From the sequence record NC_048048.2: a stretch of DNA of 64,000 bases. One strand, 5' to 3'. This document shows positions 16,013 to 29,260 of this stretch, piece after piece; the stretch's first letter is position 1, and each line of letters starts with the position of its first letter. The position numbers and the translations under genes were made by a program. Under the pieces are notes generated by a model, which saw only the letters and a list, made by a program, of their open reading frames with translations, searched no databases and was not told the DNA's origin.

Positions 16013-16034
16013 CTCCTAAGCTAAGGCCAAGACG

Positions 16035-16791: not shown

Positions 16792-17356
16792 CTGGAAACG
16801 CCTGCATCAGGCTGTCGAGTTCTATGTCGATCGCGGCTACACCTACATCGATGCGCCCTGGGCCGTCGGTCGCAAGGTCATGGACATGACCTGCCCGCGT
16901 CCCGATCTGGCCAGTCCCCTGGAGGACAAGTTCCTGGTAGGCTCGGCCGAGCAGTCGTTCCTCGAACTGGAGACCGACACCCTGGGCACGGGGCGCTTCG
17001 TGGCGCTCACGCCGTGTTTCCGCGTCGCCGACGCCGGCCGATCGGTGAACCATTCGCCCTACTTCATGAAGGTCGAGCTTTACTCGAACCTCGCGCTGCG
17101 GCGCGAGCGCGTCCTGCGCCGGATGATCGAGGACGCCAAGGCCTGCTTCACCATGCTCGGCGCGACCAACCTCGAAGTCCATCCCATCCAGGATGAGACG
17201 GCCAAGTTCGCCCAGGACATCGTCTGGCGCGGCCTGGAACTGGGCTCCTACGGCATCCGCAAACGGCAGCACCCGGTTCTGGAAGAGGAGCACATCTGGA
17301 TTTACGGCACCGGTCTAGCCGAGCCGAGGTTCTCCCAGGCGCTCCGTCGATATTGA
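16778..17356 (+). CDS. Stand-alone class II aminoacyl-tRNA synthetase-like catalytic domain
   Basis: Motif 1 (FYVDRGYTYIDAP), motif 2 (TPCFR...H..YFMKVEL) and motif 3 (GTGLAEPRF), preceded by ELGSYG; only 192 aa, with no tRNA-binding domain. Confidence 0.75.
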   Translation: MDAGSWKRLHQAVEFYVDRGYTYIDAPWAVGRKVMDMTCPRPDLASPLEDKFLVGSAEQSFLELETDTLGTGRFVALTPCFRVADAGRSVNHSPYFMKVELYSNLALRRERVLRRMIEDAKACFTMLGATNLEVHPIQDETAKFAQDIVWRGLELGSYGIRKRQHPVLEEEHIWIYGTGLAEPRFSQALRRY

Positions 17357-17452
17357 TTGCATGTCGGTGAATGAGCCCCTACCACGCGACGCTGAGCCGG
17401 CGGCCGGCTTGCGCTGTCCGAATGGGGAAAGAAGAAGCAAGGTCTGAACTAG

Positions 17453-17893
17453 ATGTCGTCAATGATATTTCACGCTTTCGCTGATGACCTGACCCAGGGC
17501 AGGTTTGATCCGGCAAACTGCCGTTTCGGGATGCTCTTGGTGTCCAAGGGATACAACCCGGACCGACGCCAGCATCGCACGCTCCAGGACATCACCCATG
17601 AAATTTCAGGCGATGGCTACGTGCAGGGCGGGCAGGAGATGCAGATCGTCCCTGGACGGGAACTTCGTTTCGTACCGACCAAATGGGAGAAGGCGACCAT
17701 CGGCGCGCGTGGCGCAGTCGTCTACCGGGCCGGAGAGACTGCCGAGGAAAGCGGGCTGGTAGGCTACCTCGACTTCGGCGAAAGGGTCTCTGTCAAGAAG
17801 GCGAACCTGACCGTCTCGATCAGAAACCCCATCAGGATGCCAGGGGTCTATTGGGGCTCTAAACCTTCCCCGGCTGGACAACGGTCAGCCTAG
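17453..17893 (+). CDS. 146-aa paralog of 4176..4592
   Basis: FGMLLVSKGYNP...HEISGDGYVQGG and TIGARGAVVY align by eye with FKVMLVTSAYTP...NEVTGTGYTAGG and TITARAAVIY. Confidence 0.75.
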   Translation: MSSMIFHAFADDLTQGRFDPANCRFGMLLVSKGYNPDRRQHRTLQDITHEISGDGYVQGGQEMQIVPGRELRFVPTKWEKATIGARGAVVYRAGETAEESGLVGYLDFGERVSVKKANLTVSIRNPIRMPGVYWGSKPSPAGQRSA

Positions 17894-17904
17894 CTTCGGG
17901 CGCC

Positions 17905-17945
17905 GTGTCACCGATCTTGACAAGGTCTTCCAGATGTGAGATACG
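17905..17945 (+). promoter_or_regulatory. Promoter of the Glu/Asp tRNA unit
   Basis: GTGTC-N7-TTGACA (17917-17922); the -10 element is weak. Confidence 0.5.
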
Positions 17946-17952
17946 GCGCTTT

Positions 17953-18018
17953 ATGACCTTCTCGACCTTCCTTTTCCGAGAGATCGGCTCCGCGAGCCGA
18001 GATACCACCGCCTCCTAG
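17953..18018 (+). CDS. Candidate 21-aa leader peptide MTFSTFLFREIGSASRDTTAS
   Basis: ATG close to the predicted transcription start; overlaps alternative hairpins directly upstream of tRNA-Glu and tRNA-Asp. Confidence 0.4.
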   Translation: MTFSTFLFREIGSASRDTTAS

Positions 18019-18046
18019 GCTGGTGGTACGACGGCTCGCGCGATGT

Positions 18047-18123
18047 GGGCCTGTCTTCTAAATGGACTAGGAATCTCGGCTTTCAATCGAGCAATGCGGG
18101 TTCGAGCCCCGTCAGGCCTACCA
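18047..18123 (+). tRNA. tRNA-Glu: tRNA-Glu(TTC)
   Basis: GGGCCTG/CAGGCCT acceptor, CTCGG-CTTTCAA-TCGAG, CCA. Confidence 0.9.
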
Positions 18124-18149
18124 ACAATTTCCGATCGAAAGCCACCCTG

Positions 18150-18225
18150 GGCTCTAGGGTGTGAGGGTTAGCAGCGCCGGCTTGTCAGGCCGGAGGAAGG
18201 GGTTCGAGTCCCCTTAGAGTCGCCA
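18150..18225 (+). tRNA. tRNA-Asp: tRNA-Asp(GTC)
   Basis: GGCTCTA/TAGAGTC acceptor, CCGGC-TTGTCAG-GCCGG, GCCA; atypical D arm. Confidence 0.9.
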
Positions 18226-18229
18226 TTTC

Positions 18230-18580
18230 GCCCGGACGGGCACAACCAATCGAAAGCACCGGGCAAGAGCGCTTAGCGGCCTCCAAGCGCCTGGGTTACG
18301 CTGGAAACGCAGGGGTCGCCGGGTCGTGCGTAACGACAGCCCTGGTCAGTGACCGATGGTGGATAAGAAATTGGTCCCAACCTGCTGTAGGTGGTTGGCG
18401 GCGCCGGGTCCGAGAACCCGGACGTATTTCCCGCTGTGGCGCTAGTAGGATGCGCTAGTGGCCATGCCATCGAGGCTCACCGCATGGGGGCCGGCGGAAG
18501 TAGCTCAGGTCCGCCTAGAGTGAAAACCCACATCATGTCGTCGGCCCCACTGCTCTGCATGCGCCGCCGACGCCCTTTCG
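18230..18580 (+). ncRNA. Candidate structured non-coding RNA of unknown family, co-transcribed with tRNA-Asp
   Basis: No credible ORF. Stems GCGCTT/AAGCGC, CCAACC/GGTTGG, CCGGGT/ACCCGG, GGGGCCG/CGGCCCC; ends at a terminator. Confidence 0.4.
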
Positions 18581-18581
18581 G

Positions 18582-18623
18582 AACCCTCGGTCAGGCCAGC
18601 CCTCACCGAGGGTTTTCCTTTTT
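18582..18623 (+). terminator. Intrinsic terminator
   Basis: AACCCTCGGT/ACCGAGGGTT stem followed by TTCCTTTTT. Confidence 0.7.
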
Positions 18624-18632
18624 ATAGAGGCC

Positions 18633-18690
18633 GTGCATTTTTTATTGCACCGTTTCTTGACACGCCTGATGACCTGTGTCATAGGCTACA
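18633..18690 (+). promoter_or_regulatory. Promoter of the 12-tRNA operon with an upstream inverted repeat
   Basis: GTGCA-N8-TGCAC palindrome (18633-18650), then TTCTTGACA (-35 at 18657-18662). Confidence 0.55.
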
Positions 18691-18738
18691 TCATCAACAG
18701 CCCAGATCGGGCGCATTTTCTCCGCCGGAACAAGGTCC

Positions 18739-18858
18739 ATGACCCGCATCCATACCACGCTGCCGACCGCCAAGCCCGCCTCCACCGGCGCGCTGACGCT
18801 CGCCTCGTGGCCGGCGTCGAGCAAGCCGCTATTGCGGCACTCAGCGGTTCTCGCCTAA
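18739..18858 (+). CDS. 39-aa leader peptide of the 12-tRNA operon (MTRIHTTLPTAKPASTGALTLASWPASSKPLLRHSAVLA)
   Basis: AAGG RBS; 33 of 38 non-start residues are P/T/K/L/H/A/S/W, exactly the amino acids of the 12 downstream tRNAs. Confidence 0.75.
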   Translation: MTRIHTTLPTAKPASTGALTLASWPASSKPLLRHSAVLA

Positions 18859-18970
18859 CAGGCGACCGCTCCGGGTGCCGCTTCTAAGCCGCACCCGATC
18901 TCTCCACGACACCTCCCAACTGTCCAGGCGAACCGGGTGCTCCTGATCTCTCAGGAGATCGCTCCTATTT
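18834..18970 (+). promoter_or_regulatory. Putative transcription attenuator (alternative hairpins) before tRNA-Pro
   Basis: GCGGCACTC 18834-42 pairs with GGGTGCCGC 18873-81. CGGGTGC at 18872-78 and at 18934-40 both pair with GCACCCG 18891-97. Terminal hairpin CTCCTGA-TCTC-TCAGGAG with a weak U tail. Confidence 0.55.
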
Positions 18971-18977
18971 GGTTCAT

Positions 18978-19053
18978 CTTGGCGTAGCGCAGTGGTAGCG
19001 CACTCGGTTTGGGACCGAGGGGTCGTGGGTTCGAATCCTCACCGCCGAGACCA
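18978..19053 (+). tRNA. tRNA-Pro: tRNA-Pro(TGG)
   Basis: CTTGGCG/CGCCGAG acceptor, CTCGG-TTTGGGA-CCGAG, ACCA. Confidence 0.9.
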
Positions 19054-19126
19054 TTTCACCCTCCGCCGGCTTTGACCGGACGATCCGCGTGCGCCTGGGC
19101 GCCGGCGGAGGCGTGTTCTTCGTTGT

Positions 19127-19203
19127 GCCGGTGTAGCTCAGCCCGGTAGAGCGTCTGCCTCGTAAGCAGGGGGTCCCTGGTTCAAATCCAGGTGTCGGCA
19201 CCA
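19127..19203 (+). tRNA. tRNA-Thr: tRNA-Thr(CGT)
   Basis: GCCGGTG/TGTCGGC acceptor (3 G-U pairs), loop CTCGTAA, ACCA. Confidence 0.85.
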
Positions 19204-19257
19204 CAAAGAACACGATCGCAAGATCAAAGAGAAGGAACAGACAAGACACAGACTTTC

Positions 19258-19344
19258 GGGCGAGTAGCCGAGTGGTTAAAGGCACCTGACTCTTAATCAG
19301 GCGTGAGAAATCCTACGTGGGTTCGAATCCCACCTCGCCCTCCA
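19258..19344 (+). tRNA. tRNA-Lys: tRNA with Lys anticodon CTT on a long-variable-arm (type II) body
   Basis: GGGCGAG/CTCGCCC acceptor, CCTGA-CTCTTAA-TCAGG, ~16-nt variable region, U73-CCA. Confidence 0.8.
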
Positions 19345-19424
19345 TTGATACCATGTTCCCGCTCGGGAACATTCTGGCCAGGACAGGGGTCTTGGGATGA
19401 GAATGTTCCCGATCGGGATCACGG

Positions 19425-19511
19425 GCGGGTGTGGCGAAGTTGGTAGCCGCGCGAGTCTCAGGTACTCGTGGTCGAAAGGCCGGGGAGGTTCGAATCCTCT
19501 CACCCGCACCA
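19425..19511 (+). tRNA. tRNA-Leu: tRNA-Leu(CAG)
   Basis: GCGGGTG/CACCCGC acceptor, CGAGT-CTCAGGT-ACTCG, long variable arm, ACCA. Confidence 0.93.
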
Positions 19512-19522
19512 ATCTGAACTGG

Positions 19523-19609
19523 GCCGAGATGGCGGAATGGTAGACGCGCCGGCTTCAAGTCCCGTGTGCCCGCAAGGGCGTCCGAGTTCGACCCTCGGTC
19601 TCGGCACCA
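19523..19609 (+). tRNA. tRNA-Leu: tRNA-Leu(CAA), imperfect anticodon stem
   Basis: GCCGAGA/TCTCGGC acceptor, loop TTCAAGT, long variable arm, ACCA. Confidence 0.85.
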
Positions 19610-19650
19610 ATCAGATTGGCGATGGAAAGCGAAAGTCATGCAAGGACAGT

Positions 19651-19738
19651 GCGGAAGTGGCGTAACGGTAGCCGCGCCAGATTGAGTATCTGGTGATCTG
19701 AAAGGGTCGTGGAGGTTCGAGTCCTCTCTTCCGCACCA
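19651..19738 (+). tRNA. tRNA-Leu: tRNA-Leu(GAG)
   Basis: GCGGAAG/CTTCCGC acceptor, CCAGA-TTGAGTA-TCTGG (U37), ACCA. Confidence 0.9.
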
Positions 19739-19771
19739 AGACAAGGAGAAGAAAAGACAGGTTTGGTTTGT

Positions 19772-19843
19772 GCTGAAATGGCCTAGCGGTTAAGGCGCTG
19801 CATTGTGGATGCAGACACGATGGTTCGAATCCATCTTTCAGTG
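19772..19843 (+). tRNA. tRNA-His: tRNA-His(GTG), no G-1 and no encoded CCA
   Basis: GCTGAAA/TTTCAGT acceptor, CTGCA-TTGTGGA-TGCAG; separated from tRNA-Ala by a single C. Confidence 0.85.
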
Positions 19844-19844
19844 C

Positions 19845-19920
19845 GGGGATATAGCTCAGTTGGTAGAGCAGTTGCTTTGCAAGCATCAGGTCGTCGGTTC
19901 GAGCCCGACTATCTCCACCA
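19845..19920 (+). tRNA. tRNA-Ala: tRNA-Ala(TGC)
   Basis: GGGGATA/TATCTCC acceptor with G3:U70, loop TTTGCAA, ACCA. Confidence 0.95.
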
Positions 19921-19985
19921 GACGAAGGGACCCAGGGCGCGGCGCCGGATCGGCGACCACCTGGGTCCGTGACAACAAGACAACT

Positions 19986-20077
19986 GGAGGGCTGGCAGAG
20001 TCTGGCTGAACGCACCCGTTTCGAACGCGGGCAGGGGTGAAAGTCCCTCGGGGGTTCAAATCCCTCGCCCTCCGCCA
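19986..20077 (+). tRNA. tRNA-Ser: tRNA-Ser(CGA)
   Basis: GGAGGGC/GCCCTCC acceptor, loop TTCGAAC, long variable arm, GCCA. Confidence 0.93.
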
Positions 20078-20095
20078 ACACGAGCCGGCATCTAT

Positions 20096-20187
20096 GGAAG
20101 GATGGCTGAGTCCGGCTGAAAGCGCCCACCTGGAACGTGGGTAGGCCTTCGCGGGCCTCGGGGGTTCAAATCCCTCTCCTTCCGCCA
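20096..20187 (+). tRNA. tRNA-Ser: tRNA-Ser(GGA)
   Basis: GGAAGGA/TCCTTCC acceptor, CCCAC-CTGGAAC-GTGGG, GCCA. Confidence 0.93.
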
Positions 20188-20221
20188 ATACCGAGCCGGC
20201 GCGGATCGCCGGCCGAAGCGA

Positions 20222-20311
20222 GGTGGGTTGACCGAGTGGTAAGGTGCGCGCTTGCTAAGCGCAGGTCAGCCTGGAAGGGCTGCGGGGGTTCGATCCCCTC
20301 ACCCACCGCCA
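20222..20311 (+). tRNA. tRNA-Ser: tRNA-Ser(GCT)
   Basis: GGTGGGT/ACCCACC acceptor, loop TTGCTAA, long variable arm, GCCA. Confidence 0.93.
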
Positions 20312-20326
20312 TCGCTTCGACGATGC

Positions 20327-20402
20327 AGGAGTATAGCTCAACTGGTAGAGCGCTGGTCTCCAAAACCAGAGGTTGGGGGTTCGAGTCCCTCTGCTCCTGC
20401 CA
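20327..20402 (+). tRNA. tRNA-Trp: tRNA-Trp(CCA)
   Basis: AGGAGTA/TGCTCCT acceptor, CTGGT-CTCCAAA-ACCAG, GCCA. Confidence 0.95.
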
Positions 20403-20446
20403 ACACCGTTTCATCGATCCACAGCACCAAGGAAAGGAGGACACCG

Positions 20447-20677
20447 ATGAGAAATCCCACCATGACCCAATGCCGTATGACGCGAGGCGAGACCGGTGTC
20501 CTGATCTCGTGGATTCCGACCGAGTTCGCCCAGGTCGGCCGCAAGATCGACCTGAAGGAAAAGGACTTCTGGTCGCGCGGCTGGATCGTCGACAAGGTCT
20601 GGACCACGATGGACGCCAAGGCGGTCGCCGAGCGCGGCCACGACTACCGCATCCACCGTCGGGCCACCGACGTCTAA
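20447..20677 (+). CDS. 76-aa hypothetical protein at the end of the tRNA operon
   Basis: Strong AAGGAGG RBS before ATG at 20447. Confidence 0.75.
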   Translation: MRNPTMTQCRMTRGETGVLISWIPTEFAQVGRKIDLKEKDFWSRGWIVDKVWTTMDAKAVAERGHDYRIHRRATDV

Positions 20678-20713
20678 GAGGTTGGCCCTGCCATGTGTAG
20701 GAGCCGCATCGGG

Positions 20714-20743
20714 GCCGCCCAGGCATGACCTGGGCGGCTTTTG
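20714..20743 (+). terminator. Intrinsic terminator of the tRNA operon
   Basis: GCCGCCCAGG/CCTGGGCGGC stem followed by TTTTG. Confidence 0.8.
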
Positions 20744-20748
20744 TCGCG

Positions 20749-21156
20749 TTAGAGGGTAACGAGTTCGATGCCTCTGGTATGGGACACGACGAGCCAGTCG
20801 CGCCCAGTGGATTTCAGGAAAATCGCGATGGGAACCTTGGACGCGTCATTGTCTTTCGTGATGCCTAGGGCCACGCCAGAATCGTTCCCGTTGATGACGA
20901 AATTGGGGACTGACCGGTCCTCCATGCTGATCCCAGCGAGCTTGATAGCTTGTCCGTTGGGGGCATTAATGTTGAAATGCAGGCGAATGAACAATTCGTC
21001 GCCTACTTCCTGACCACCCGCGATTTGAGCGGCGTAGATGCCGGCTTCATCGCCGCCAGTTACGACGTCGACGATTTTTTGACCGTCCGGGTTGATAATG
21101 GGCCATTGGAAATAAGGGGCGTCAGCCTGGGTGAGCAGAATGGTGTGCCGAGACAT
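20749..21156 (-). CDS. 135-aa hypothetical protein with visibly lower GC
   Basis: AAAAGGAGA RBS; AT-richer codons than neighbouring genes. Confidence 0.7.
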   Translation of the reverse strand: MSRHTILLTQADAPYFQWPIINPDGQKIVDVVTGGDEAGIYAAQIAGGQEVGDELFIRLHFNINAPNGQAIKLAGISMEDRSVPNFVINGNDSGVALGITKDNDASKVPIAIFLKSTGRDWLVVSHTRGIELVTL

Positions 21157-21323
21157 GCGTATCTCCTTTTAGGTACTAGCCTTCGGACGGCGGGTGAACG
21201 GCGCCAGCGGGCTGGCCCAGCTACCGGCCCAGCGCCGGCAGCCCCTCCTACCCGATCCATGTGACAAGTCTATCTAAGATCGAGTTTTATCCACAGCAGC
21301 TTTAACGCGAGTATAGGCGCACG

Positions 21324-21350
21324 AAAAAGGGCTCCCCGGAGGGAGCCCTT
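21324..21350 (-). terminator. Intrinsic terminator ending the large minus-strand RNA (possibly bidirectional)
   Basis: GGGCTCCC/GGGAGCCC stem, 4-nt loop, TTTTT on the minus strand. Confidence 0.8.
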
Positions 21351-22190
21351 ATTGTTTGAAAGGTTGAGACACTAGGCCTTTCTCGACGAGACCTCAGGGA
21401 TTATCCTTGCTCAGGTTCCCCTGGGAGTCCAGGAGCCTTTCGGCTTCTCTGTCCCGCCAACGACGGTCATTTTAGGTCCACCACAGACCGTCCTGTTAAA
21501 CTACTCAGCCTCTCCGCTACCATCAAAGGCTGGCCGGCCCTCGAAGGAAGTTTCCTGACACTCACCTCAGAACCTTGCGGGGTCCTGCGATGCCCCTGCT
21601 AAGCCGAAGCCCAGGGGACGTAGTCGTCTATCGTTCAACAGCGGACTGACTTTCGCTTGTGCTTCGTCAGCCAATGATGATCGGGGTTGGTTTAAGCCCC
21701 GTGCTACCTTCCCTAGTGAAGACGTGCAGTACCTTGGGCTTCGTGGCTTTTGGCCACAAAATACCCTACGCCTCCGTGTCCCTCAGATCGGAACGGTCCT
21801 GCCCGAAAATCCCTCCAGATGCTTTTCACACCCGGCGTGACTTCCAGAAGAACTGGGTCTCGCCCTAAGCCGGTATCTCTCCGGCCTCGAACTGTCGTAG
21901 TAGGCTGTCGCCCAGCTACCCCCTACACCTGAATCCTCGCCGACAAGGCCGCCTTGATGTGTTCCTCCCGGCGGATATCACCCCGCACCAGAGCGCCTGT
22001 CGGCGCCTTTCGAGACAGAACACGGCCCCTTCGACTATCCTCCACCCCCAGTTTTTACCTGGGTATGAAAGACGGGCTGGTTAGGCCCGGTCTTCGATGC
22101 CTGCTTGAGTGAGCCCGGTTTCCCAGGTGGCGAAGGATAGGGCCTCCGCCTCGTTGCCGGGTTGCCCCGGCCGCGTCGCTCTCAAGCGAT
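21351..22190 (-). ncRNA. ~840-nt highly structured non-coding RNA, probably GOLLD family
   Basis: Bounded by its own promoter and terminator; no credible ORF; many tetraloop-capped stems on the minus strand (CCGGG-GCAA-CCCGG, AGCC-GAAA-GGCT, GGGC-TTCG-GCTT). Size and position beside phage tRNAs fit GOLLD; the family call has not been tested with a covariance model. Confidence 0.65.
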
Positions 22191-22196
22191 GACTGG

Positions 22197-22225
22197 GTTG
22201 TAGACGGACGATTTTCCGGGGTCAA
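22197..22225 (-). promoter_or_regulatory. Promoter of the large ncRNA
   Basis: TTGACC-17 nt-TACAAC on the minus strand; predicted start ~22190. Confidence 0.75.
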
Positions 22226-22270
22226 CAGGCATTTCGAACTTTTTTCGAAAAAGTTTCGATCGACGTCCCC

Positions 22271-22311
22271 GTGACGCGTTTCTTGACCCGACATCTCCCT
22301 TAGGGCAGAAG
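22271..22311 (+). promoter_or_regulatory. Divergent rightward promoter
   Basis: GTGAC-N7-TTGACC-17 nt-CAGAAG. Confidence 0.55.
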
Positions 22312-22663
22312 GGTTTCGAGGGCGCCACGCGTAGTGGAAGAATCCGTGCTCCCGCCCAAGGCGCGGCCGTGTAGCGACACAGTCCTGCACATCAGGCCAA
22401 CCCTAAGCCGCAGCGCGTTGTCTACCCGCATGCCTCGGGCAATAGGCAAATCCCGGTCCGGCGGACATCCCTCGAAGCTGGAGGAGATAACCGGAGGATA
22501 CCGTCCCCGTGGGACGGATGGAAGGAAGGGATTTTGTCGATCCCTGGTAGGCCGTCCAGGCTGTAGCGCTGCTGTCTGGGTCCGGGACCGCCAAATTCGG
22601 CGAAACGCGAAAAGAGCCCGGCTGGTTTCGCGGCTGGCCGGGCTCACTACCCCTGGAAACCTC

Positions 22664-22987
22664 ATGATCGACAACACCTTCGTCCTCGCGGATGGCCCGC
22701 TGTACCTCACCTTGGAGGCGGCCTTGGAGGCGCCCGGTGCGATCTACACCCACGTCAAGAAGGGCGGCATCTATCGCCGTATGGGCGAGGCCAAGTACGC
22801 AGGCGAGGCGGCGGCCGAGACCCTGGAAGGCGTGATGATGGCCGTCTACGAGCATCTCTACCCATACGAGCACTCTTTCTTTGTTCGTCCTCAAAGTGAG
22901 TTTGTCGAGGTCGTACGGACCCAGCACGGCGAGCACCGCCGTTTCGTCTTTCACACCAATGAGATACTCACCGTCCTCGACACCTGA
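22664..22987 (+). CDS. DUF1653-like small protein (107 aa)
   Basis: GIYTHVKKGGIY...MAVYEHLY...FVRPQSEF...RRF pattern; ATG at 22664. Confidence 0.7.
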   Translation: MIDNTFVLADGPLYLTLEAALEAPGAIYTHVKKGGIYRRMGEAKYAGEAAAETLEGVMMAVYEHLYPYEHSFFVRPQSEFVEVVRTQHGEHRRFVFHTNEILTVLDT

Positions 22988-23022
22988 CATGCGTCAAAAG
23001 CCTTGTCATACAAGGCGTCACG

Positions 23023-23063
23023 GTGTCGCCGATCTTGACTTGACACTCGATCTCCGGTAGAAG
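23023..23063 (+). promoter_or_regulatory. Promoter
   Basis: GTGTC-N7-TTGACT-17 nt-TAGAAG. Confidence 0.65.
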
Positions 23064-23089
23064 GCAGACCTGCTTTCAAGGAAATTGTG

Positions 23090-25438
23090 ATGGCCAAGCC
23101 GCTGATCGCGGCGACGAAGCGTCAGCGCTTGTCGCCTGCGCATGTCCCCCTGATCCCTACCGACATCGAACTCAGCAGCACCCAGGTGCCAGCCGGTAGC
23201 CCTGCGGGCACCACGATTGGCATATTGACGGCCAAGCCCGAGGTGGGCGAGATCGACTTTGTCCTTCTCGACGACGCCGGTGGCAAGTTCGCCATCGACG
23301 GCGCCCGGCTGGTGATCGGCCCGGTCGCCTCGGCTGGCGCGACGCTCAACATCACCGTGCGCGCCATCGCCCGCTTCTCCAAGCTCTGGGTCGACAAGGT
23401 CTTCGGCGTCGAGGTCCAGACCGTGGTCGCCCCGATCATCCTGTCGCCGACCAATCCGACCATCCTGGAAAACAGCCCCGCAGGTACTCAAGTCGCGGCG
23501 ATCTCCTCGCCCGGCTCGACCTTGGCGCTGACCAACAATGCCGGCAATCGCTTTGCCTTGAACGGCGTCAACCTCCAGGCCGGCAGCGTGCCGACCGACT
23601 ACGAGACCGCCACCAGCCACGACGTCACCATCTCGGCCACCAACAATGGCGACACCATTTCCGAGATCGTCACTGTCCAGGTGATCAATGTCGTCGAGAT
23701 CACCAACATCACCCTGTCAGCCAACACCATCGCCGAGAACTCGGCGGCCGGAACAGTCGTGGGCCAACTGGCCTCGGTCCCGGCTGGCGCGACGCTCACC
23801 CTGACCAACAACGCCGGCAATCGCTTCGCCATCGACGGCAGCAACCGGCTGGTCGCGGGCAGCGTCGCAACCGATTACGAGACCAACACCACACACGACG
23901 TGACGGTGCGAGCCACCAAGGGTCCTGACGTCTACGACAAGACCTTCACGATCAACGTCACCAACGTCAACGAACTGACCGATATCACCCTGTCGGCCAA
24001 CACCATCGCCGAGAACTCGGCGGCCGGGACGGTCGTGGGCAATCTCGCCAGCGTGATCGCCGGCGCCTCGTTCACCGTGACCAGCCAGACGCCGTCTGGC
24101 GCCTACTTCACGGTCAACGGCTCCAATCAGCTTGTCGCCGGTGCCACGCCGACCAACTACGAGGCAAACACCTCCCACTCGGTCACCATCCAGGCGACGC
24201 GCGGGACCGACACCTTCTCCAAGACCTTCACCGTCAACGTGACCAACGTCACCGAGATCACCGACTTCACCCTGTCGGCCAACACCATCACCGAGGGCGC
24301 GGCCCAGACCACCCAGGTGGGCCTCTTCACCTCGACGCCGACGGGCGCGACCTACGCCCTGGCGCCGGACAACACCGCCGGCACGCTGTTCCAGGTTTCC
24401 GGCACGGCCCTCCAGGCCGGCTCGACCGCCACCAACTACGAGAACGCCACCAGCCACGTCGTGAAGATTCGCGCCACCCGAGGCGGTGAGACCCTCGACA
24501 AGAACTTCACGATCAACGTCACCAACGTGGTCGAACTGAGCGACTTCACTCTCTCGGGTTCCTCGATCGACGAGAATTCCGGCCAAGGTACGGGCGTGGG
24601 CACCCTGTCCTCCACGCCGACCGGCGCGACCTACAGCTTCGTGGCGCCCAACAGCAGCGCCGGCAGCCGCTTCCAGATCAGCGGCAATGCGCTCCAGGCT
24701 GGCCCCGTGTCGACTGATTACGAGTCGGCGACCAGCCACGCCATCACCATCCGCGCCTCTCGCGGCGGCGAGACGATGGACAAGAACTTCACAATCACCG
24801 TCAACGACATCAACGAAGCGCCACCACCGCCGGACCTGGACAGCTTCAGCCTGTCGGGCAACTCCATTGATGAGAACTCGGGCGCGGGCACCTTTGTGGG
24901 CACCTTCTCGTCGAGTCCGTCGGGCGCTAGCTATGTCTTGACCAATTCGGCCGGCGGGCGTTTCGCTATTTCTGGCACGTCCCTCGTCGCGGGGTCGACG
25001 CCGACGGACTATGAGACAGCTACCAGCCATTCGATCTCGGTTAATGCTACGCGTGGAGCCACCACGCTGAGCGACAGCTTCACGATCAACGTCAACAACC
25101 TCGCCGAAGGCGGCGGGGGTAGTCAGACGCTGACCGTCAGCAAGAATAAAGGCAATTTGACAGGTTCAATCGTGGGGGGAACTACCCCTCCCACCACGTC
25201 AGAAACGATTACGGCGACTGCGTCTGGTGGCACGGCTCCCTATTCCTACGACTGGGAATATGTCAGCGGCGACACCCTGATCTTCCTGGCGAACGTCTCG
25301 CCCCAAGAAGCCTATTGGTACCTGGGCAACGGCGATCGTCCAGCCAACCGCACCGCCATCTGGCGATGCAAGGCGACCGACGCGGTCGGAAATTACGGCT
25401 ATACCTCCAACACTCAGATCACCCTCACGTGGTCATGA
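23090..25438 (+). CDS. Cadherin-like repeat protein (about seven ~92-aa repeats plus a C-terminal domain)
   Basis: Repeats of LSxNTIxENSxxGTxVG...DYExxTSHxVTIxA...KxFTINVxNVxE; AAGGA RBS. Confidence 0.85.
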   Translation: MAKPLIAATKRQRLSPAHVPLIPTDIELSSTQVPAGSPAGTTIGILTAKPEVGEIDFVLLDDAGGKFAIDGARLVIGPVASAGATLNITVRAIARFSKLWVDKVFGVEVQTVVAPIILSPTNPTILENSPAGTQVAAISSPGSTLALTNNAGNRFALNGVNLQAGSVPTDYETATSHDVTISATNNGDTISEIVTVQVINVVEITNITLSANTIAENSAAGTVVGQLASVPAGATLTLTNNAGNRFAIDGSNRLVAGSVATDYETNTTHDVTVRATKGPDVYDKTFTINVTNVNELTDITLSANTIAENSAAGTVVGNLASVIAGASFTVTSQTPSGAYFTVNGSNQLVAGATPTNYEANTSHSVTIQATRGTDTFSKTFTVNVTNVTEITDFTLSANTITEGAAQTTQVGLFTSTPTGATYALAPDNTAGTLFQVSGTALQAGSTATNYENATSHVVKIRATRGGETLDKNFTINVTNVVELSDFTLSGSSIDENSGQGTGVGTLSSTPTGATYSFVAPNSSAGSRFQISGNALQAGPVSTDYESATSHAITIRASRGGETMDKNFTITVNDINEAPPPPDLDSFSLSGNSIDENSGAGTFVGTFSSSPSGASYVLTNSAGGRFAISGTSLVAGSTPTDYETATSHSISVNATRGATTLSDSFTINVNNLAEGGGGSQTLTVSKNKGNLTGSIVGGTTPPTTSETITATASGGTAPYSYDWEYVSGDTLIFLANVSPQEAYWYLGNGDRPANRTAIWRCKATDAVGNYGYTSNTQITLTWS

Positions 25439-25440
25439 TA

Positions 25441-25466
25441 AAAAGCCCGGCTTCGGCCGGGCTTTT
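25441..25466 (+). terminator. Bidirectional intrinsic terminator
   Basis: AAAAGCCCGG-CTTCGG-CCGGGCTTTT. Confidence 0.85.
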
Positions 25467-25469
25467 CGT

Positions 25470-25497
25470 TTGACGGCGTCACCGCGCCGCGTATGGT
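25470..25497 (+). promoter_or_regulatory. Promoter
   Basis: TTGACG-16 nt-TATGGT. Confidence 0.55.
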
Positions 25498-25542
25498 GGC
25501 CTCACGGCGGAGAGATCGCGCCGTTCAGAAGGAGAAACCACC

Positions 25543-26079
25543 ATGACCATGATCGTCAAGATCATGACGGGCCATGACCTGCCCGACGATTCCCCCTATA
25601 AGACCTTCACCCTGGTCTCCGACGTCAAGAGCTTGACGTTCCACACCCAGGCCGACAGCGAAGGCCGGCGCCATTCTTTCATGCGCGCCTATATCGCCGA
25701 TCCGGTTAAGACCGCCGAGGTTCCGGGCTTCAGCGAGCACGAGGTCCTCTACGACATTCCGGCCCAGGCCAACGTCTATGTGATGAACGGCAACGGCAAG
25801 ACCATCTCGTCTTGGACCCCGCCGCCTGCCGACACTCAGGGTAAGTTCGTGGTCGACAGCGCCACGCCCATCCAGTTCGTCGACGTGGGCAAGGACACCA
25901 TCTACGGCCGCCAGGAGCGCTACTGCGTCCTGCGCGCCGCCGACTTCCTACCCAAGAAAGCGGCCGAGTTGGCGGGTTTTGAGCCTCGCCCCGAGGTCAT
26001 CGACGCGCTGGAGTCCGATCCCCTGCTGGCGGACCAGATCAGGCAATTGAAGGCCAAGGCCAAGCCGCCGGCCGAGTAG
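25543..26079 (+). CDS. 178-aa hypothetical protein
   Basis: AAGGAGA RBS; typical codon usage. Confidence 0.8.
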   Translation: MTMIVKIMTGHDLPDDSPYKTFTLVSDVKSLTFHTQADSEGRRHSFMRAYIADPVKTAEVPGFSEHEVLYDIPAQANVYVMNGNGKTISSWTPPPADTQGKFVVDSATPIQFVDVGKDTIYGRQERYCVLRAADFLPKKAAELAGFEPRPEVIDALESDPLLADQIRQLKAKAKPPAE

Positions 26080-26114
26080 GCCTGACTGGGCCTGCCAAGA
26101 AAATCATCGCCACC

Positions 26115-26156
26115 GCGACACGTTTCTTGACAGGCCCCTATGGCCTGATGTATAAG
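26115..26156 (+). promoter_or_regulatory. Promoter of the 8-tRNA operon; predicted start lies at the leader ATG (leaderless)
   Basis: GCGAC-N7-TTGACA-18 nt-TATAAG with TG just upstream; ATG 7 nt downstream. Confidence 0.7.
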
Positions 26157-26163
26157 CCACCTC

Positions 26164-26262
26164 ATGAGCAAGACGTATCGTCAATTTGTGCGCCAGATTC
26201 AGTTCGTCCGAGTTAATCGGACGGGCCTTTCGCGCATGGTTGACGGTGGGACCTCGATCTAG
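26164..26262 (+). CDS. 32-aa leader peptide of the 8-tRNA operon (MSKTYRQFVRQIQFVRVNRTGLSRMVDGGTSI)
   Basis: Codons 5-18 are all read by the eight downstream tRNAs; the ORF overlaps attenuator segments 1 and 2. Confidence 0.8.
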   Translation: MSKTYRQFVRQIQFVRVNRTGLSRMVDGGTSI

Positions 26263-26328
26263 GTCCCAGACCCGCTCAAACCCATCCTGCGAAGGCCCGT
26301 CCGATCTCTCGGACGGGCCTTTTCTTTT
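26205..26328 (+). promoter_or_regulatory. Four-segment transcription attenuator
   Basis: Seg1 CGTCCGA 26205-11; seg2 TCGGACGGGCCTTT 26217-30; seg3 AAGGCCCGTCCGA 26292-304; seg4 TCGGACGGGCCTT 26309-21 plus TTCTTTT. Pairings 1:2, 2:3 and 3:4 are all possible and adjacent pairings are mutually exclusive. Confidence 0.8.
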
Positions 26329-26375
26329 GTCCTCAATCCAAGGAGTTTCGCCATGCAAGGCGATGCCTATCGCTC

Positions 26376-26459
26376 GGGCCGGCTGGGCACGAGTGAGCCC
26401 ACGGGCCTGTAAAGCCCACGCGAAAGCTGTGGAGGTGCAAATTCCTCTCCGGCCCACCA
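26376..26459 (+). tRNA. tRNA-Tyr: tRNA-Tyr(GTA), atypical T loop (TGC)
   Basis: GGGCCGG/CCGGCCC acceptor, loop CTGTAAA, variable arm, ACCA. Confidence 0.8.
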
Positions 26460-26490
26460 GTTTCCGCAGAGCCGAGTATTCGGACCCTGC

Positions 26491-26562
26491 GCTTCAGTAG
26501 CTCAGTGGTAGAGCGCCTCGGTGACATCGAGGAGGTCGTAGGTTCAAGTCCTACCTGAAGCA
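26491..26562 (+). tRNA. tRNA-Val: tRNA-Val(GAC), no encoded CCA
   Basis: GCTTCAG/CTGAAGC acceptor, CCTCG-GTGACAT-CGAGG; one C before tRNA-Ile. Confidence 0.88.
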
Positions 26563-26563
26563 C

Positions 26564-26639
26564 GCTAGGTTAGCTCAGATGGTAGAGCACCCGATCGATA
26601 ATCGGGATGTCGCAGGTTCGAGCCCTGCACCTAGCACCA
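26564..26639 (+). tRNA. tRNA-Ile: tRNA-Ile(GAT)
   Basis: GCTAGGT/ACCTAGC acceptor, CCCGA-TCGATAA-TCGGG (C33), ACCA. Confidence 0.9.
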
Positions 26640-26755
26640 AACACTCTATACGGTTTGGCGTATATTCAAGAAATATACGCAATAGCGTATAATCCAGTAG
26701 ACAAATACGGAATTCCGTATATTCGATGAGGTGAAGAACGAGAGGAACAAGATAC

Positions 26756-26830
26756 GGGCCGGTAGCTCAGTGGTAGAGCGCTGCTGTCACATAGCAGATG
26801 TCGAGTGTTCGAGACACTCCCGGCCCACCA
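26756..26830 (+). tRNA. tRNA-Val: tRNA-Val(CAC)
   Basis: GGGCCGG/CCGGCCC acceptor, CTGCT-GTCACAT-AGCAG, ACCA. Confidence 0.9.
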
Positions 26831-26835
26831 GTTGT

Positions 26836-26909
26836 TGGGGCATGGTGTAATGGTAACACGTCGGACTTTGGTTCCGAAATTCCAGGTTCGAGTCCTGGTG
26901 CCCCAGCCA
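26836..26909 (+). tRNA. tRNA-Gln: tRNA-Gln(TTG)
   Basis: TGGGGCA/TGCCCCA acceptor, TCGGA-CTTTGGT-TCCGA, GCCA. Confidence 0.93.
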
Positions 26910-26967
26910 ACTTACGAAGACAACGAGGACTGATGTGACCAGTCCAGTGGAGAAGAGACAGGTTTGT

Positions 26968-27042
26968 TCCCGAGTAGCTCAGCGGTAGAGCGGCTCGCTG
27001 TTAACGAGAAGGTCGCAGGTTCGAATCCTGCCTCGGGAGCCA
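26968..27042 (+). tRNA. tRNA-Asn: tRNA-Asn(GTT)
   Basis: TCCCGAG/CTCGGGA acceptor, loop CTGTTAA, GCCA. Confidence 0.95.
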
Positions 27043-27056
27043 ATACTTTTCTCCAC

Positions 27057-27135
27057 GCCCGGTTAGCTCAGCGGAATTAAGAGCAGACGCCTACGAAGCG
27101 TAAGGTCGGGGGTTCGAATCCCTCACCGGGTGCCA
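27057..27135 (+). tRNA. tRNA-Arg: tRNA-Arg(ACG)
   Basis: GCCCGGT/ACCGGGT acceptor, loop CTACGAA, GCCA. Confidence 0.92.
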
Positions 27136-27161
27136 TTTCTCTGCAAGGTTGCGTACCTTGC

Positions 27162-27237
27162 GCATGGATAGCTCAGATGGTAGAGCGCCGGCGTGAAGCC
27201 CCGGAGGCCAGTGGTTCGATCCCACTTCCATGCACCA
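27162..27237 (+). tRNA. tRNA-Phe: tRNA-Phe(GAA), atypical anticodon loop
   Basis: GCATGGA/TCCATGC acceptor, CCGG(C)-GTGAAGC-(C)CCGG, ACCA. Confidence 0.85.
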
Positions 27238-27258
27238 GTTTCTCGGTGACCGCGAAGC

Positions 27259-27292
27259 GGCCGTCAGGACATTCGGTCCTGGCGGCCTTTTT
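27259..27292 (+). terminator. Intrinsic terminator of the 8-tRNA operon
   Basis: GGCCGTCAGGAC/GTCCTGGCGGCC stem followed by TTTTT. Confidence 0.85.
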
Positions 27293-27383
27293 CATGGATC
27301 GAAGGTCGCCGAGTCGAGTTCTCGACTTACTGGCAAGTTCTGGATTAAGTAAAACGTCAGGATGTATTTTGCGACGCGGCACC

Positions 27384-27424
27384 GTGACGCGAATCTTGAC
27401 ACAGAGCACATCCTACCCTAACCT
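27384..27424 (+). promoter_or_regulatory. Promoter
   Basis: GTGAC-N7-TTGACA-17 nt-TAACCT. Confidence 0.7.
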
Positions 27425-27438
27425 GCAACCACTTTTCA

Positions 27439-27633
27439 ATGGCTCAAGTCGGGGACGCGAGCATGGCCCATGCCACAGAACGTCCTCCCGAAGCGGCTTC
27501 GGAGGAAACCGAACAAACGCCGCGAAGGATGCACGCCATGAAGACGCTCATCGAGCATCTGCGTCAAGCCCAGATCGAGGCCGAAGCAGAGCGCAACGCC
27601 CACACCGCGACGCCTCCGGCGAAGGAGGCCTAA
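27439..27633 (+). CDS. Small hypothetical protein (likely start 27463)
   Basis: GGGGA RBS before ATG at 27463. Confidence 0.5.
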   Translation: MAQVGDASMAHATERPPEAASEETEQTPRRMHAMKTLIEHLRQAQIEAEAERNAHTATPPAKEA

Positions 27634-27636
27634 GTC

Positions 27637-27978
27637 ATGTCCTCGGCTAATACCACCGCCCAGGCGCGCGAGCGTCACCTTCAAATCCAACTGTTCGAGT
27701 CGATCAACGACAAGCTCGACAAGGTCGACGTGCGTTTCGACAAGGTCGAGGATCGCTTCGACAAGCTGTCGGACTCGATCACCGACGTCTCGACCCGCCT
27801 GACCCGGATCGAGGCCTCGGACGTCGCCTCGCGCGTCCAGAAGCTCGAAGACACCATCCACCAGACCGACACCCGCATCACCAAGCTGGAGACGATCCTG
27901 CTGCCGGTCACGGGCCTGGGTTCGGCCCTCGCCGGCGCCCTGGTGACGTGGGCCTTCAACCTCCTGCCGCACACCTAA
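27637..27978 (+). CDS. 113-aa coiled-coil protein with a C-terminal transmembrane helix
   Basis: Heptad DKLDKVDVRFDKVEDRFDKL repeats; hydrophobic ILLPVTGLGSALAGALVTWAF; GGAGG RBS. Confidence 0.75.
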   Translation: MSSANTTAQARERHLQIQLFESINDKLDKVDVRFDKVEDRFDKLSDSITDVSTRLTRIEASDVASRVQKLEDTIHQTDTRITKLETILLPVTGLGSALAGALVTWAFNLLPHT

Positions 27979-28126
27979 CGGTATAGCTTAAGCATTAGCT
28001 AGACCATAAGGTGCGTCAACCTACCTCAGGTTAAAATTTCCTAAACACCAGTCCGCGCCTCTTGTTCCTTCAAAAACTCCCTGTACGGTCATCGTCAACA
28101 GCGATCCAGGGCGTAGAGGAGAGAAC

Positions 28127-28348
28127 ATGCTGGCCGCCGCAACCGCTTACAGCCCCCAGGAGGATAACCGCCTGGAGGCCGTAGATCAGGCTCAAGAGGG
28201 CCTGATTCTTTCGACCACCACCCTTACCGAACTCTGCGCGGAACCCCTGTCTGACATGGGCGTCGCGCGGATGGCCAAGCTGATCGCCCAGGTCAACCAG
28301 GACGTGATGCTCACCATCGAGGCTTGGAAGGCCAGTAAAACCGTGTAG
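28127..28348 (+). CDS. 73-aa hypothetical protein
   Basis: GAGGAG RBS. Confidence 0.6.
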   Translation: MLAAATAYSPQEDNRLEAVDQAQEGLILSTTTLTELCAEPLSDMGVARMAKLIAQVNQDVMLTIEAWKASKTV

Positions 28349-28381
28349 CCCCTCGGTCGGAGGGGCCTGAAGGGAGTCCCT

Positions 28382-29260
28382 TTGACTGACCTGCTTCCCG
28401 AAGACATGTTCGAGGCTCGTCCTCTGAACAAGGCTGCTGTTCGAGCCCAGCGTCGCGCCGCCGCCAAGAATCAACCCGCTTCGGACCGCCGTCAACGCAC
28501 CGGGGACCAACCCGGCGCCAAGCCCCTAGAAGCTAAGACGGCGAAGCAAGCCGAGTACATCGCCCATCTCCAGGCCGGCAAGTCCGTCGCCGCCACGGGC
28601 GGCGCCGGCACGGGCAAGACCTACGTGGCTGCCCGTGTTGGAGCGCGGGGCCTGATCGAGGGACGCTTCGAGAAGATCGTCCTCTGCCGCGTGGCCGTTT
28701 CCAAGCCCAAGCACGCGATGGGCTTCCTGCCCGGCAAGATCGAAGACAAGCTCAAGCCCTGGCTGGTGCCGGTGATCGACGGCCTGCGCGCCGAGGTCTC
28801 GGCCGGCACGCTCGATGAGTGGAAGGCCAAGGGCATGTTCGAGGTCGTCGCCTTCGAGCACATGCGCGGGCGCACCTTCAGCAACGCCTTCGTCATCCTG
28901 GACGAAGCCCAGAACGCAGATTTCGGCGACCTCAAGCTGTTCCTGACCCGCACCGGCGCCAACAGCCAGATCGTGCTAACCGGCGACATGGACCAGATCG
29001 ACATCCCCAACTCGGGCCTCGCCGAGGTCATCGACATGATCCTCGACTACGACGTCCCGGTAGAAGTCGTGCAGTTCACCTCGGCCGACGTCGTGCGCTC
29101 GCCGCTGGCCAAGGCCTTCGTCCAGGCGTTCGAGCGCCACGCCGCGACCAAGAAGGCCCTGGCTGAAGGTCAGCGCCACGAGCCGGCGAATGGCGCGTTT
29201 CTTGACCGTGCGCCTGCTTTCCTTAACAATGGACTGTCGGCGCACAAACTCGCCGCCTAG
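28382..29260 (+). CDS. phoH: PhoH-family ATPase
   Basis: GGAGTGKT Walker A, GFLPG, MRGRTF, ILDEAQN, LTRTG, TGDxxQ and DVVRS motifs. Confidence 0.95.
   Translation: MTDLLPEDMFEARPLNKAAVRAQRRAAAKNQPASDRRQRTGDQPGAKPLEAKTAKQAEYIAHLQAGKSVAATGGAGTGKTYVAARVGARGLIEGRFEKIVLCRVAVSKPKHAMGFLPGKIEDKLKPWLVPVIDGLRAEVSAGTLDEWKAKGMFEVVAFEHMRGRTFSNAFVILDEAQNADFGDLKLFLTRTGANSQIVLTGDMDQIDIPNSGLAEVIDMILDYDVPVEVVQFTSADVVRSPLAKAFVQAFERHAATKKALAEGQRHEPANGAFLDRAPAFLNNGLSAHKLAA

Follow-up and report, generated by a model that had tools for sequence, protein, structure and literature searches.

A candidate leader-peptide attenuator upstream of a transfer RNA operon in Caulobacter phage CcrSC and composition-matched leaders in other phages

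How are the transfer RNA (tRNA) genes that large phages carry controlled? This question is raised by a stretch of 64,000 nucleotides (nt) of the record NC_048048.2, hereafter the window, which corresponds with 100% identity to bases 62001-126000 of Caulobacter phage CcrSC (MH588547.2), classed in Bertelyvirus, subfamily Dolichocephalovirinae. The window was found by ARAGORN to hold 24 tRNA genes in several clusters, and the element described here, a short open reading frame (ORF) followed by alternative RNA hairpins, is located between the gene gp149 and a cluster of seven tRNA genes at 26491-27237. The GenBank record of CcrSC has no annotation in this gap, the leader ORF included. From the sequence and its comparison with other phages we propose that the element is probably a ribosome-mediated leader-peptide transcription attenuator governing an eight-gene phage tRNA operon.

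The leader region and its codon run

The element and the operon downstream of it comprise the following features:

26127..26132, plus strand: -35-like TTGACA within TTCTTGACA; TTGAC is invariant in 11 aligned relatives and its flanks are variable.
26151..26156, plus strand: -10-like TATAAG, with an 18-nt spacer and 7 nt to the ATG; its second base, A, never varies, and no lineage departs from the 7-nt distance.
26164..26262, plus strand: leader ORF MSKTYRQFVRQIQFVRVNRTGLSRMVDGGTSI, 32 codons and TAG (ATG 26164-26166, stop codon TAG 26260-26262), conserved with 3-nt indels only.
26176..26217, plus strand: putative regulatory run, codons 5-18 (TAT CGT CAA TTT GTG CGC CAG ATT CAG TTC GTC CGA GTT AAT), all 14 decodable by the tRNAs of the operon.
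26205..26211, plus strand: segment 1 (CGTCCGA), 5' arm of the 1:2 anti-antiterminator hairpin of 7-10 base pairs (bp), conserved and with compensatory changes.
26217..26233, plus strand: segment 2 (TCGGACGGGCCTT-T-CGC), partner of segment 1 or segment 3 according to pairing and covariation.
26248..26267, plus strand: hairpin GGGACC-N8-GGTCCC with the leader stop codon; single-sequence folds place a hairpin here in 11 of 11 relatives.
26288..26304, plus strand: segment 3 (GCG-AAGGCCCGTCCGA), partner of segment 2 (antiterminator) or segment 4 (terminator) according to pairing and covariation.
26309..26330, plus strand: intrinsic terminator, composed of segment 4 (TCGGACGGGCCTTT, 26309-26322) and the T-run TTTTCTTTT (26320-26328), conserved and covarying.
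26376..26459, plus strand: tRNA-Tyr(GTA)-like gene, unannotated, with an encoded ACCA end, a T-loop of 8 nt (GGUGCAAAUUCC), a sub-threshold score on the Rfam tRNA model and a cloverleaf fold.
26491..27237, plus strand: seven canonical tRNA genes, Val-GAC, Ile-GAT, Val-CAC, Gln-TTG, Asn-GTT, Arg-ACG and Phe-GAA, identified by ARAGORN, in the GenBank record and by Rfam at the gathering threshold.
27259..27296 (or 27259-27287), plus strand: operon-closing terminator of 12 pairs followed by TTTTT.

The promoter-like site (26127-26156) is thus 5' of the leader ORF, and the first tRNA-like gene, at 26376, is 3' of it. The motif TTCTTGACA was found five times in the window, against 0.31 expected, and the site in front of the leader is the sole occurrence in the window of the arrangement TTGAC[ACG]-N16-18-TA....-6-8 nt-ATG. 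The leader mRNA is predicted to be leaderless or near-leaderless; in Caulobacter, leaderless mRNAs are translated about as efficiently as leadered ones (PMC4117421). No -35-like TTGAC was found between the attenuator terminator and the end of the cluster (26331-27395 scanned), and given this and the closing terminator the tRNAs appear to depend on passage through the switch.

The initial annotation of this DNA had singled out codons 5-18 of the leader as being read, all 14 of them, by the tRNAs encoded downstream. When the codons readable by the anticodons GTA, ACG, TTG, GAA, CAC, GAT, GAC and GTT were derived by standard wobble rules, the 14 codons all fell within the resulting set of 16 codons and all eight anticodons were used. 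The set makes up 23.1% of all triplets of the window, in which runs of at least 14 such codons are expected 1.6e-4 times (all frames, both strands). With this one run excepted, the run-length distribution in the six frames of the window ends at 8, and 200 second-order Markov simulations mostly gave a longest run of 7-9, reaching 13 once. The longest run of in-set amino acids among the 304 small ORFs of the window is likewise that of the leader (15 residues, the next being 8). The leader uses 13 of the 16 possible distinct codons (P about 0.004 under uniform draws), and those amino acids that have a single leader codon take the U-ending one (TAT, ATT and AAT), which represents 14-39% of synonymous usage in the long ORFs of the window.

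Two alternative helices had been described for the region downstream of the run, each with 13 pairs. For the 2:3 antiterminator this was borne out, since the helix has 13 perfect pairs, or 16 when one bulged U is allowed. The 3:4 terminator (26291-26328) was the top match in a terminator scan and has the described stem and T-run; the stem consists of 14 pairs, nine of them G-C, is closed by a 4-nt loop and is followed by TTTTCTTTT. The leader RNA as a whole folds at -81.7 kcal/mol (z = -7.7 versus shuffled versions). Single-sequence folds further contain a conserved long stem, here termed P0, that pairs codons 5-10 with codons 24-29 and encloses the 1:2 hairpin, and the 5' AUGAGC pairs with a downstream GCUCA, which co-varies to AUGAUG/CAUCA in Colossusviruses. 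The P0 pairing accounts for some of the very high nucleotide conservation of the leader, and it also predicts that an untranslated leader terminates by default.

Conservation and leader-tRNA matching in other phages

Using BLAST and locus retrieval, the element was found 5' of the homologous tRNA cluster in the phages CcrBL9, RB23/BL47, CcrPW, CcrColossus, phiCbK, CcrRogue and CcrBL10, and likewise in the Brevundimonas phages Kikimora, Domovoi and Bajun and in one soil metagenomic contig. The 12 lineages comprise Bertelyvirus, Colossusvirus, Shapirovirus, Poindextervirus, several unassigned Brevundimonas phages and the metagenomic contig. Frame, stop position and ORF length (31-33 codons) are kept in all 12, and alignment gaps are exactly 3 nt inside the ORF and irregular 3' of the stop. 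The common layout consists of TTGAC, a -10-like element with the invariant second A, 7 nt, the ATG, the ORF, the stop-codon hairpin and a GGCCCG...CGGGCC terminator with T-run. A pattern specific for the leader retrieved only known isolates from IMG/VR and one new lineage from metagenomes, and had no match in 185,579 species-representative bacterial and archaeal genomes; a loose pattern (CGGGCCNNTCG..AAGGCCCG) gave at least 118 mostly chance matches in IMG/VR, among which two Rogue-like contigs are real.

The leader peptide reads MSKT-YRQFVRQIQFVRVNR-.. in CcrSC, ..YRQFVRQIQVVRNIR.. in phiCbK, ..YRQFVQIQVVRNFR.. in Rogue, ..YRNNVQQIRVRQFN.. in CcrPW, ..YRNNVRQIRVRQFN.. in Colossus, ..YRQNVQNIRVVRFYR.. 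in Kikimora, ..YRNNVQQIQVVRFNR.. in Domovoi, ..YRQNVQNIRVVRFNR.. in Bajun and ..YRQNVRFIQVVRFNR.. in the metagenomic contig. The conserved skeleton of these peptides implies that they are homologous. Their variable positions are occupied by Q/N, F/N, R/Q, Q/N/F, Q/R, F/V/S, V/R, R/Q, V/N/F and N/I/F/Y, and 14 of the at least 15 replacements inferred within the run remain within the set {Y,R,Q,N,V,I,F}. The probability of this outcome is 9e-7 under a null of 0.31 based on proteome composition and 2e-8 under a null of 0.23 based on single-nucleotide neighbours. The in-set replacements include chemically radical ones (F<->N, V/N/F), which argue for selection on the decoding tRNA rather than on the peptide.

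The RNA pairings are conserved as well. In an alignment of 11 sequences the 2:3 helix is 86.9% paired, versus 30-48% when the partner is slid by 1-3 columns; four of its pairs (eight cells) are changed on both sides, and its covariation score exceeds those of all 500 shuffles. RNAalifold recovered the 1:2 and the 3:4 helix, each of which contains compensatory pairs. The sequences of the four segments change in concert, reading GTCCGA / TCGGAC / GTCCGA / TCGGAC in CcrSC, TCCGG / CCGGGC / GCCTGG / CCAGGC in phiCbK and GCCAG / CTTGGC / GCCAGG / CCTGGC in Colossus.

The initial annotation had counted eight tRNAs downstream of the leader. This stands for the seven canonical genes, but the eighth, Tyr-GTA, lies below the Rfam threshold, is neither called by ARAGORN nor present in the GenBank record, and is supported as a real tRNA at the level of the family only; without it the codon run counts 13 codons. 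The CcrSC gene has a 7-bp acceptor stem, a CUGUAAA anticodon loop and a cloverleaf as its minimum-energy fold, and departs from a canonical tRNA in its score and in having an 8-nt instead of a 7-nt T-loop. A homologue with a CTGTAA loop and co-varying stems occupies the equivalent slot of every relative. The variant T-loop GGUGCAAAUUCC is common to CcrSC, CcrBL9, CcrPW, Colossus and Domovoi, and the canonical T-loop GGTTCGA is found in RB23, phiCbK and Rogue. Kikimora and Bajun also have a canonical T-loop, and there the homologue is called by ARAGORN and annotated as tRNA-Tyr. Judged by these homologues the gene is a real tRNA-Tyr at the family level that is non-canonical in CcrSC. The phiCbK group has been described as having no Tyr tRNA (PMC3556154).

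Leaders were also found in two more distant phages with differently arranged tRNA arrays, the Erythrobacter phage vB_EliS-L02 (L02) and the Sphingobium phage Lacusarx, and it is these that tested the matching most convincingly. In L02, MFNVIAMNNPAPAIMVPVAMACVEGTRD and a strong terminator precede the operon Pro, Pro, a CAT-anticodon tRNA-like gene, Val, Ile, Ala, Asn; MTFGRTKRDRREGDERGFTS precedes Lys, Lys, Gly, Gly, Asp, Ile, Glu, Glu, Arg, Arg, Phe, Arg; and MFTQTALHLLTQTTLCWQCQYSSLSPF precedes Ser, Tyr, Leu, Leu, Thr, His, Gln, Gln, Ser, Cys, Trp, Thr. The three L02 leaders (MFNVIAMNNPAPAIMVPVAMA.., MTFGRTKRDRREGDERGFTS and MFTQTALHLLTQTTLCWQCQYSSLSPF) each rank first among 717 small ORFs (125 kb) for the amino acid set of their own operon. 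In Lacusarx, ..MFTRFGKRDRREGERGFSL precedes Lys-Lys-Gly-Asp-Glu-Glu-Gly-Arg-Phe, and MFTQTTLLTQCHYWQLLSSSSL, located after TTGACA-N17-TATCAT-7 nt-ATG, precedes Ser..Leu-Thr-His-Gln-Ser-Cys-Trp. The leaders of both phages are 74-90% in-set for their own operon versus 0-26% for other operons (binomial P 1e-3 to 5e-9). Their peptide sequences are not shared between L02, Lacusarx and the CcrSC group; what is shared is the principle of matching. In some leaders of L02 and Lacusarx the terminal hairpin lacks a clear T-run; the matching principle is general, but intrinsic termination may not always be the step that is controlled.

In several cases leader codons corresponded to tRNA-like genes that are non-canonical or unannotated or had been mis-called. 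The Arg codons of the phiCbK leader correspond to a non-canonical gene with an ACG anticodon, and its Asn codons to a gene with a CTGTTAA loop (anticodon GTT) that ARAGORN had mis-called as Ile-AAT. An ACG-anticodon (Arg) gene is likewise present in Kikimora. The first L02 leader has three internal Met codons, whose counterpart is the weak CAT-anticodon gene of that operon, and Lacusarx has an unannotated CAT-anticodon gene scoring 41 bits. Each of these genes matches leader codons of its own operon:

phiCbK (locus L011), 2384-2465: tRNA-like gene with anticodon GTT.
phiCbK (locus L011), 2484-2564: tRNA-like gene with anticodon ACG.
Kikimora (locus L010), 14045-14125: tRNA-like gene with anticodon ACG.
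L02 (locus L146), 21233-21299: tRNA-like gene with anticodon CAT.
Lacusarx (locus L147), 2006-2078: tRNA-like gene with anticodon CAT.

A further small ORF of L02 (25531-25644, locus L146), Leu-rich and of 37 codons, lies directly 5' of tRNA-Leu(TAA). Its Leu codons are never TTA or TTG, and it may encode a small membrane peptide rather than a leader.

Conservation, covariation, in-set replacements and leader-tRNA matching all favour a translated leader coupled to a terminator/antiterminator switch, as had initially been suggested for CcrSC. A broader reading, which covers the CbK-like alphaproteobacterial phages (Dolichocephalovirinae, L02 and Lacusarx) and which we consider somewhat more likely than not, is that each tRNA operon stands under its own leader polling exactly its tRNAs and that each leader would act as a codon-resolved homeostat of tRNA supply.

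Proposed mechanism and rival explanations

Under the proposed mechanism transcription would start at or adjacent to the A of the ATG at 26164, and a ribosome would translate the nascent leader. Codons 5-18, many of them U- or A-ending and minor in the long ORFs of the window, would poll the tRNAs encoded downstream, namely Tyr, Arg, Gln, Phe, Val (two), Ile and Asn. If any of these codons is decoded slowly, the ribosome would linger over the 5' part of the leader and segment 1, so that 2:3 pairs, no terminator forms and the tRNA genes are transcribed by read-through. If decoding is fast, either the emergence of segments 3 and 4 would find the ribosome covering segment 2 or barely beyond it, or P0 and 1:2 would re-form behind it, and 3:4 would form. 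If the leader is not translated at all, P0 and the 1:2 hairpin would trap segment 2 and again leave 3:4 to form. With 3:4 formed, transcription would end at ~26325. The net effect would be negative feedback, a direction of regulation that we infer together with its dynamic range, by which tRNA supply, as the quantity sensed, would be held to demand during infection.

The switch was modelled by ribosome-mask folding, in which 31 nt around the ribosome were blocked and the remainder was folded at equilibrium. With the full transcript and the ribosomal aminoacyl site (A-site) at ~codons 11-14, the equilibrium moves away from 3:4 and towards 2:3 in CcrSC, RB23, Rogue, Kikimora, Domovoi and Bajun, six of the nine lineages, a result that is only suggestive. 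In transcripts ending at segment 3, 2:3 is favoured whenever segment 2 is uncovered. It follows that the decision of the switch must be kinetic, as in classical attenuators. The initial annotation had complete translation mask segment 2, which holds for the ribosome in transit, as segment 2 is masked solely with the A-site at ~codons 17-27; it does not hold for a ribosome parked at the stop codon, 27 nt beyond segment 2.

Several results weigh against the proposed attenuator. In the mask model no switch was seen in CcrPW or Colossus and only a weak one in phiCbK, the minimum-energy fold of the full-length CcrSC leader is a nested combination of 1:4 and 2:3, and stalls at codons 15-18 would, in this crude model, favour termination. 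The composition of the run is partly inherited, as shown by the conserved skeleton YRxxVxxIxVVRxxR, and the nucleotides of codons 5-10 are also constrained by their pairing with codons 24-29. The Ser of CcrBL9, the sole out-of-set replacement, lies inside the run. The Tyr-like gene of CcrSC, with 18.4 bits on the Rfam tRNA model (E = 0.3 when 396 nt were searched), falls short of the gathering score, which is 29. The leaders of Kikimora and Domovoi contain a Phe codon and no Phe tRNA was found in their clusters, and in some lineages CGG leader codons occur without a detected Arg-CCG tRNA. Strict co-variation between leader and tRNAs in the Dolichocephalovirinae is thus upheld in part: the Arg and Asn tRNA-like genes were found (phiCbK, Kikimora), the Phe tRNA of Kikimora was not.

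It is unlikely, in our view, that the attenuator is real but senses general translation status or amino acid starvation, with the tRNAs as mere cargo and multivalent sensing of the ilv type. Such a sensor would have an architecture identical to that of the biosynthetic attenuators, its reading of aminoacyl-tRNA delivery would integrate amino acid, synthetase and tRNA, and the default-off fold of P0 and 1:2 would report whether the leader is translated at all. Extra tRNA, however, gives no relief from amino acid starvation, and the leader amino acids match their own and not the neighbouring operons in five phage groups (74-90% versus 0-26%), a specificity for which it is difficult to account if anything but the tRNAs is the variable that matters. 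That the ORF is instead an independent micro-gene, encoding a functional peptide of 32 residues (a small regulator or an arrest peptide) with its own terminator, and that the tRNAs are expressed by unregulated read-through or from an unrecognised promoter, seems quite improbable. The conserved skeleton, the conserved C-terminal G-R-S-R-M-x-D-G-G and the annotation of the ORF as a hypothetical protein in some records fit a micro-gene. Yet radical changes at its variable positions are confined to the tRNA-matched set, the conserved C-terminal part overlaps segment 2 and the 3' strand of P0 and is therefore explained by RNA pairing, and the co-varying complementarity of the four segments is not needed for a simple terminator. 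Searches of Pfam and PHROGs gave no family match for the leader peptides, no -35-like motif lies 3' of the terminator, and the L02 and Lacusarx leaders share the matching and not the peptide sequence.

A structured non-coding leader in which the ORF is incidental, such as a processing or stability element or a riboswitch-like RNA binding a protein or tRNA, would account for the very strong predicted structure (z = -7.7), for the near-invariance of the nucleotides among Bertelyviruses and for the co-variation of the 5' AUGAGC/GCUCA pairing. It would leave without an RNA-level explanation the in-set pattern of amino acids, and further points against it are the retention of frame, -10-to-start distance and stop position in 12 of 12 lineages, the indels, which are of 3 nt inside the ORF and irregular after it, and the lack of a T-box or other cis-regulatory match in Rfam; we give it a very low probability. 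Chance, meaning a fortuitous ORF beside an ordinary terminator, is already contradicted by the comparative data and can practically be dismissed: one of 200 Markov simulations did reach a run of 13, but such runs as that of CcrSC are expected only 1.6e-4 times in the window, and chance would have to produce its location between a promoter and the matching tRNAs, its conservation across genera and its replication in other phages.

Other elements of the window and relation to known systems

Two of the other tRNA clusters of CcrSC have candidate leaders of their own. Cluster C comprises 12 tRNA genes (Pro...Trp, 18978-20402) and is preceded by the candidate leader ORF MTRIHTTLPTAKPASTGALTLASWPASSKPLLRHSAVLA at 18739-18858, upstream of which TTCTTGACA recurs at 18654. 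The eight amino acids of the operon make up 33 of its 38 residues (87%), and the ORF ranks 4th of 304 small ORFs for in-set content; on its own this is weak, as P, A, T and S abound in the off-frame ORFs of GC-rich DNA as well. CcrBL9 and RB23 have the ORF almost unchanged, annotated there as a hypothetical protein, and versions of like composition but strongly diverged sequence are present in CcrPW and Kikimora. A complex structure is present downstream of the ORF (region 18655-18977). Cluster B (Glu, Asp) has a conserved ORF of 21 codons (MTFSTFLFREIGSASRDTTAS, 17954-18019) directly 5' of tRNA-Glu and tRNA-Asp (region 17917-18050), which follows TTGACA-N17-GATACG-7 nt-ATG. One Glu and one Asp codon flank a 7-bp hairpin in this ORF, and its composition is not significant; relatives read ..EREA..GRD.., and alternative pairings overlap the 5' end of tRNA-Glu. 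For the Gly/Thr tRNA pair at 15840 no leader was found.

Just 3' of the attenuator terminator, a Shine-Dalgarno-like AAGGAG (26340-26345) is followed by an ORF of 19 codons (26353-26412) that runs into the Tyr-like tRNA. At this position (26340-26412) relatives have a GATC...GGAGATC hairpin and mini-ORFs of 4 codons, the mini-ORF after the terminator reading MNNGG* in CcrPW, Colossus and Rogue and MTGGD* in Kikimora and Domovoi. A GATCTC-TCA-GGAGATC hairpin at 18944-18961, preceding tRNA-Pro of cluster C, resembles this post-attenuator hairpin. Within the operon, three tandem palindromes of the form TATACG-N6-CGTATA, the third being AATACGGAATTCCGTATA, lie between tRNA-Ile and tRNA-Val(CAC) at 26647-26721, to which they are confined within the window (0.01 expected). 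They are kept in CcrBL9, RB23 and Kikimora with symmetric compensatory changes, contain a perfect TATAAT, and may serve as operator sites or as hairpins in RNA processing. On the minus strand, some 1 kb downstream of the end of the large tRNA cluster (20402), a GOLLD RNA-like match covers the full length of the Rfam model (21361-21776; 120 bits, E = 1e-31, gathering score 150). Besides tRNAs, no structured RNAs are given in the phiCbK genome paper (PMC3556154).

The same tRNA clusters have been described before for phiCbK-like phages, Lacusarx and L02, and the genome papers of phiCbK, Lacusarx and L02 treat the tRNAs as helpers in codon usage and do not mention leader ORFs or attenuation (PMC3556154, PMC5648845, PMC9127768). 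Terminators upstream of the clusters had already been predicted in the phiCbK and Colossus records. In the full-text literature, with subscription journals outside its coverage, no account of leader-ORF attenuation on tRNA operons was found. If the proposal is true, this would be the first leader-peptide attenuation of tRNA genes as far as our literature searches show, and the phage would measure and correct its decoding capacity codon by codon, implying that the tRNAs, the odd ones included, act in translation. The question of why large phages carry tRNA genes, and how these are controlled, is thereby made testable. As a corollary, the composition of a leader would predict the tRNA content of its operon and provide an annotation rule for tRNA genes missed by standard finders, in this case the non-canonical Tyr-, Arg-, Asn- and Met-like genes that are absent from published annotations. 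Classical attenuation would be extended to RNA cargo acting back on the sensor that controls it, and would thereby offer a compact natural design of tRNA homeostasis.

Among known systems, T-boxes resemble the element in that their leaders, too, decide between terminator and antiterminator according to a specific tRNA. They differ in that a single uncharged tRNA is bound directly, by means of a specifier codon and of the T-box sequence, and without translation; cmscan gave no T-box match (E<=1 over 15000-28500; E<=10 over 26100-26495). Nor did any Rfam leader family (His, Trp, Thr, Leu, Phe and others) match, the only matches being spurious, sub-threshold and driven by the terminator hairpin.

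In E. coli the pheM leader of pheST is a case of bacterial leader-peptide attenuation of a synthetase in which one amino acid is sensed. As there, a component of the translation apparatus would be controlled in CcrSC via the decoding of its cognate codons, the cargo being a tRNA operon instead. Every sequence-level feature of trp/his/ilv-type attenuators that we tested for is present. With the trp, his, leu, thr, pheA, ilvGMEDA and ilvBN attenuators the element shares a short leader ORF with many regulatory codons, the pairings 1:2, 2:3 and 3:4, which overlap one another, an intrinsic terminator and a fold that would be set by ribosome position. As in the ilv leaders, several amino acids would be sensed at once, and ilvL is also about 32 codons long. 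In Caulobacter itself, ilvBN is controlled by a leader-peptide attenuator (PMC4117421). Unlike the biosynthetic attenuators, the CcrSC element is phage-encoded, its mRNA is predicted to be leaderless, its ORF runs 14 codons beyond segment 2, and the additional P0 stem encloses 1:2. Its leader would poll seven amino acids (eight tRNA species), and its cargo consists of tRNA genes rather than enzymes or synthetases, so that the regulatory loop would close directly on the sensed molecule.

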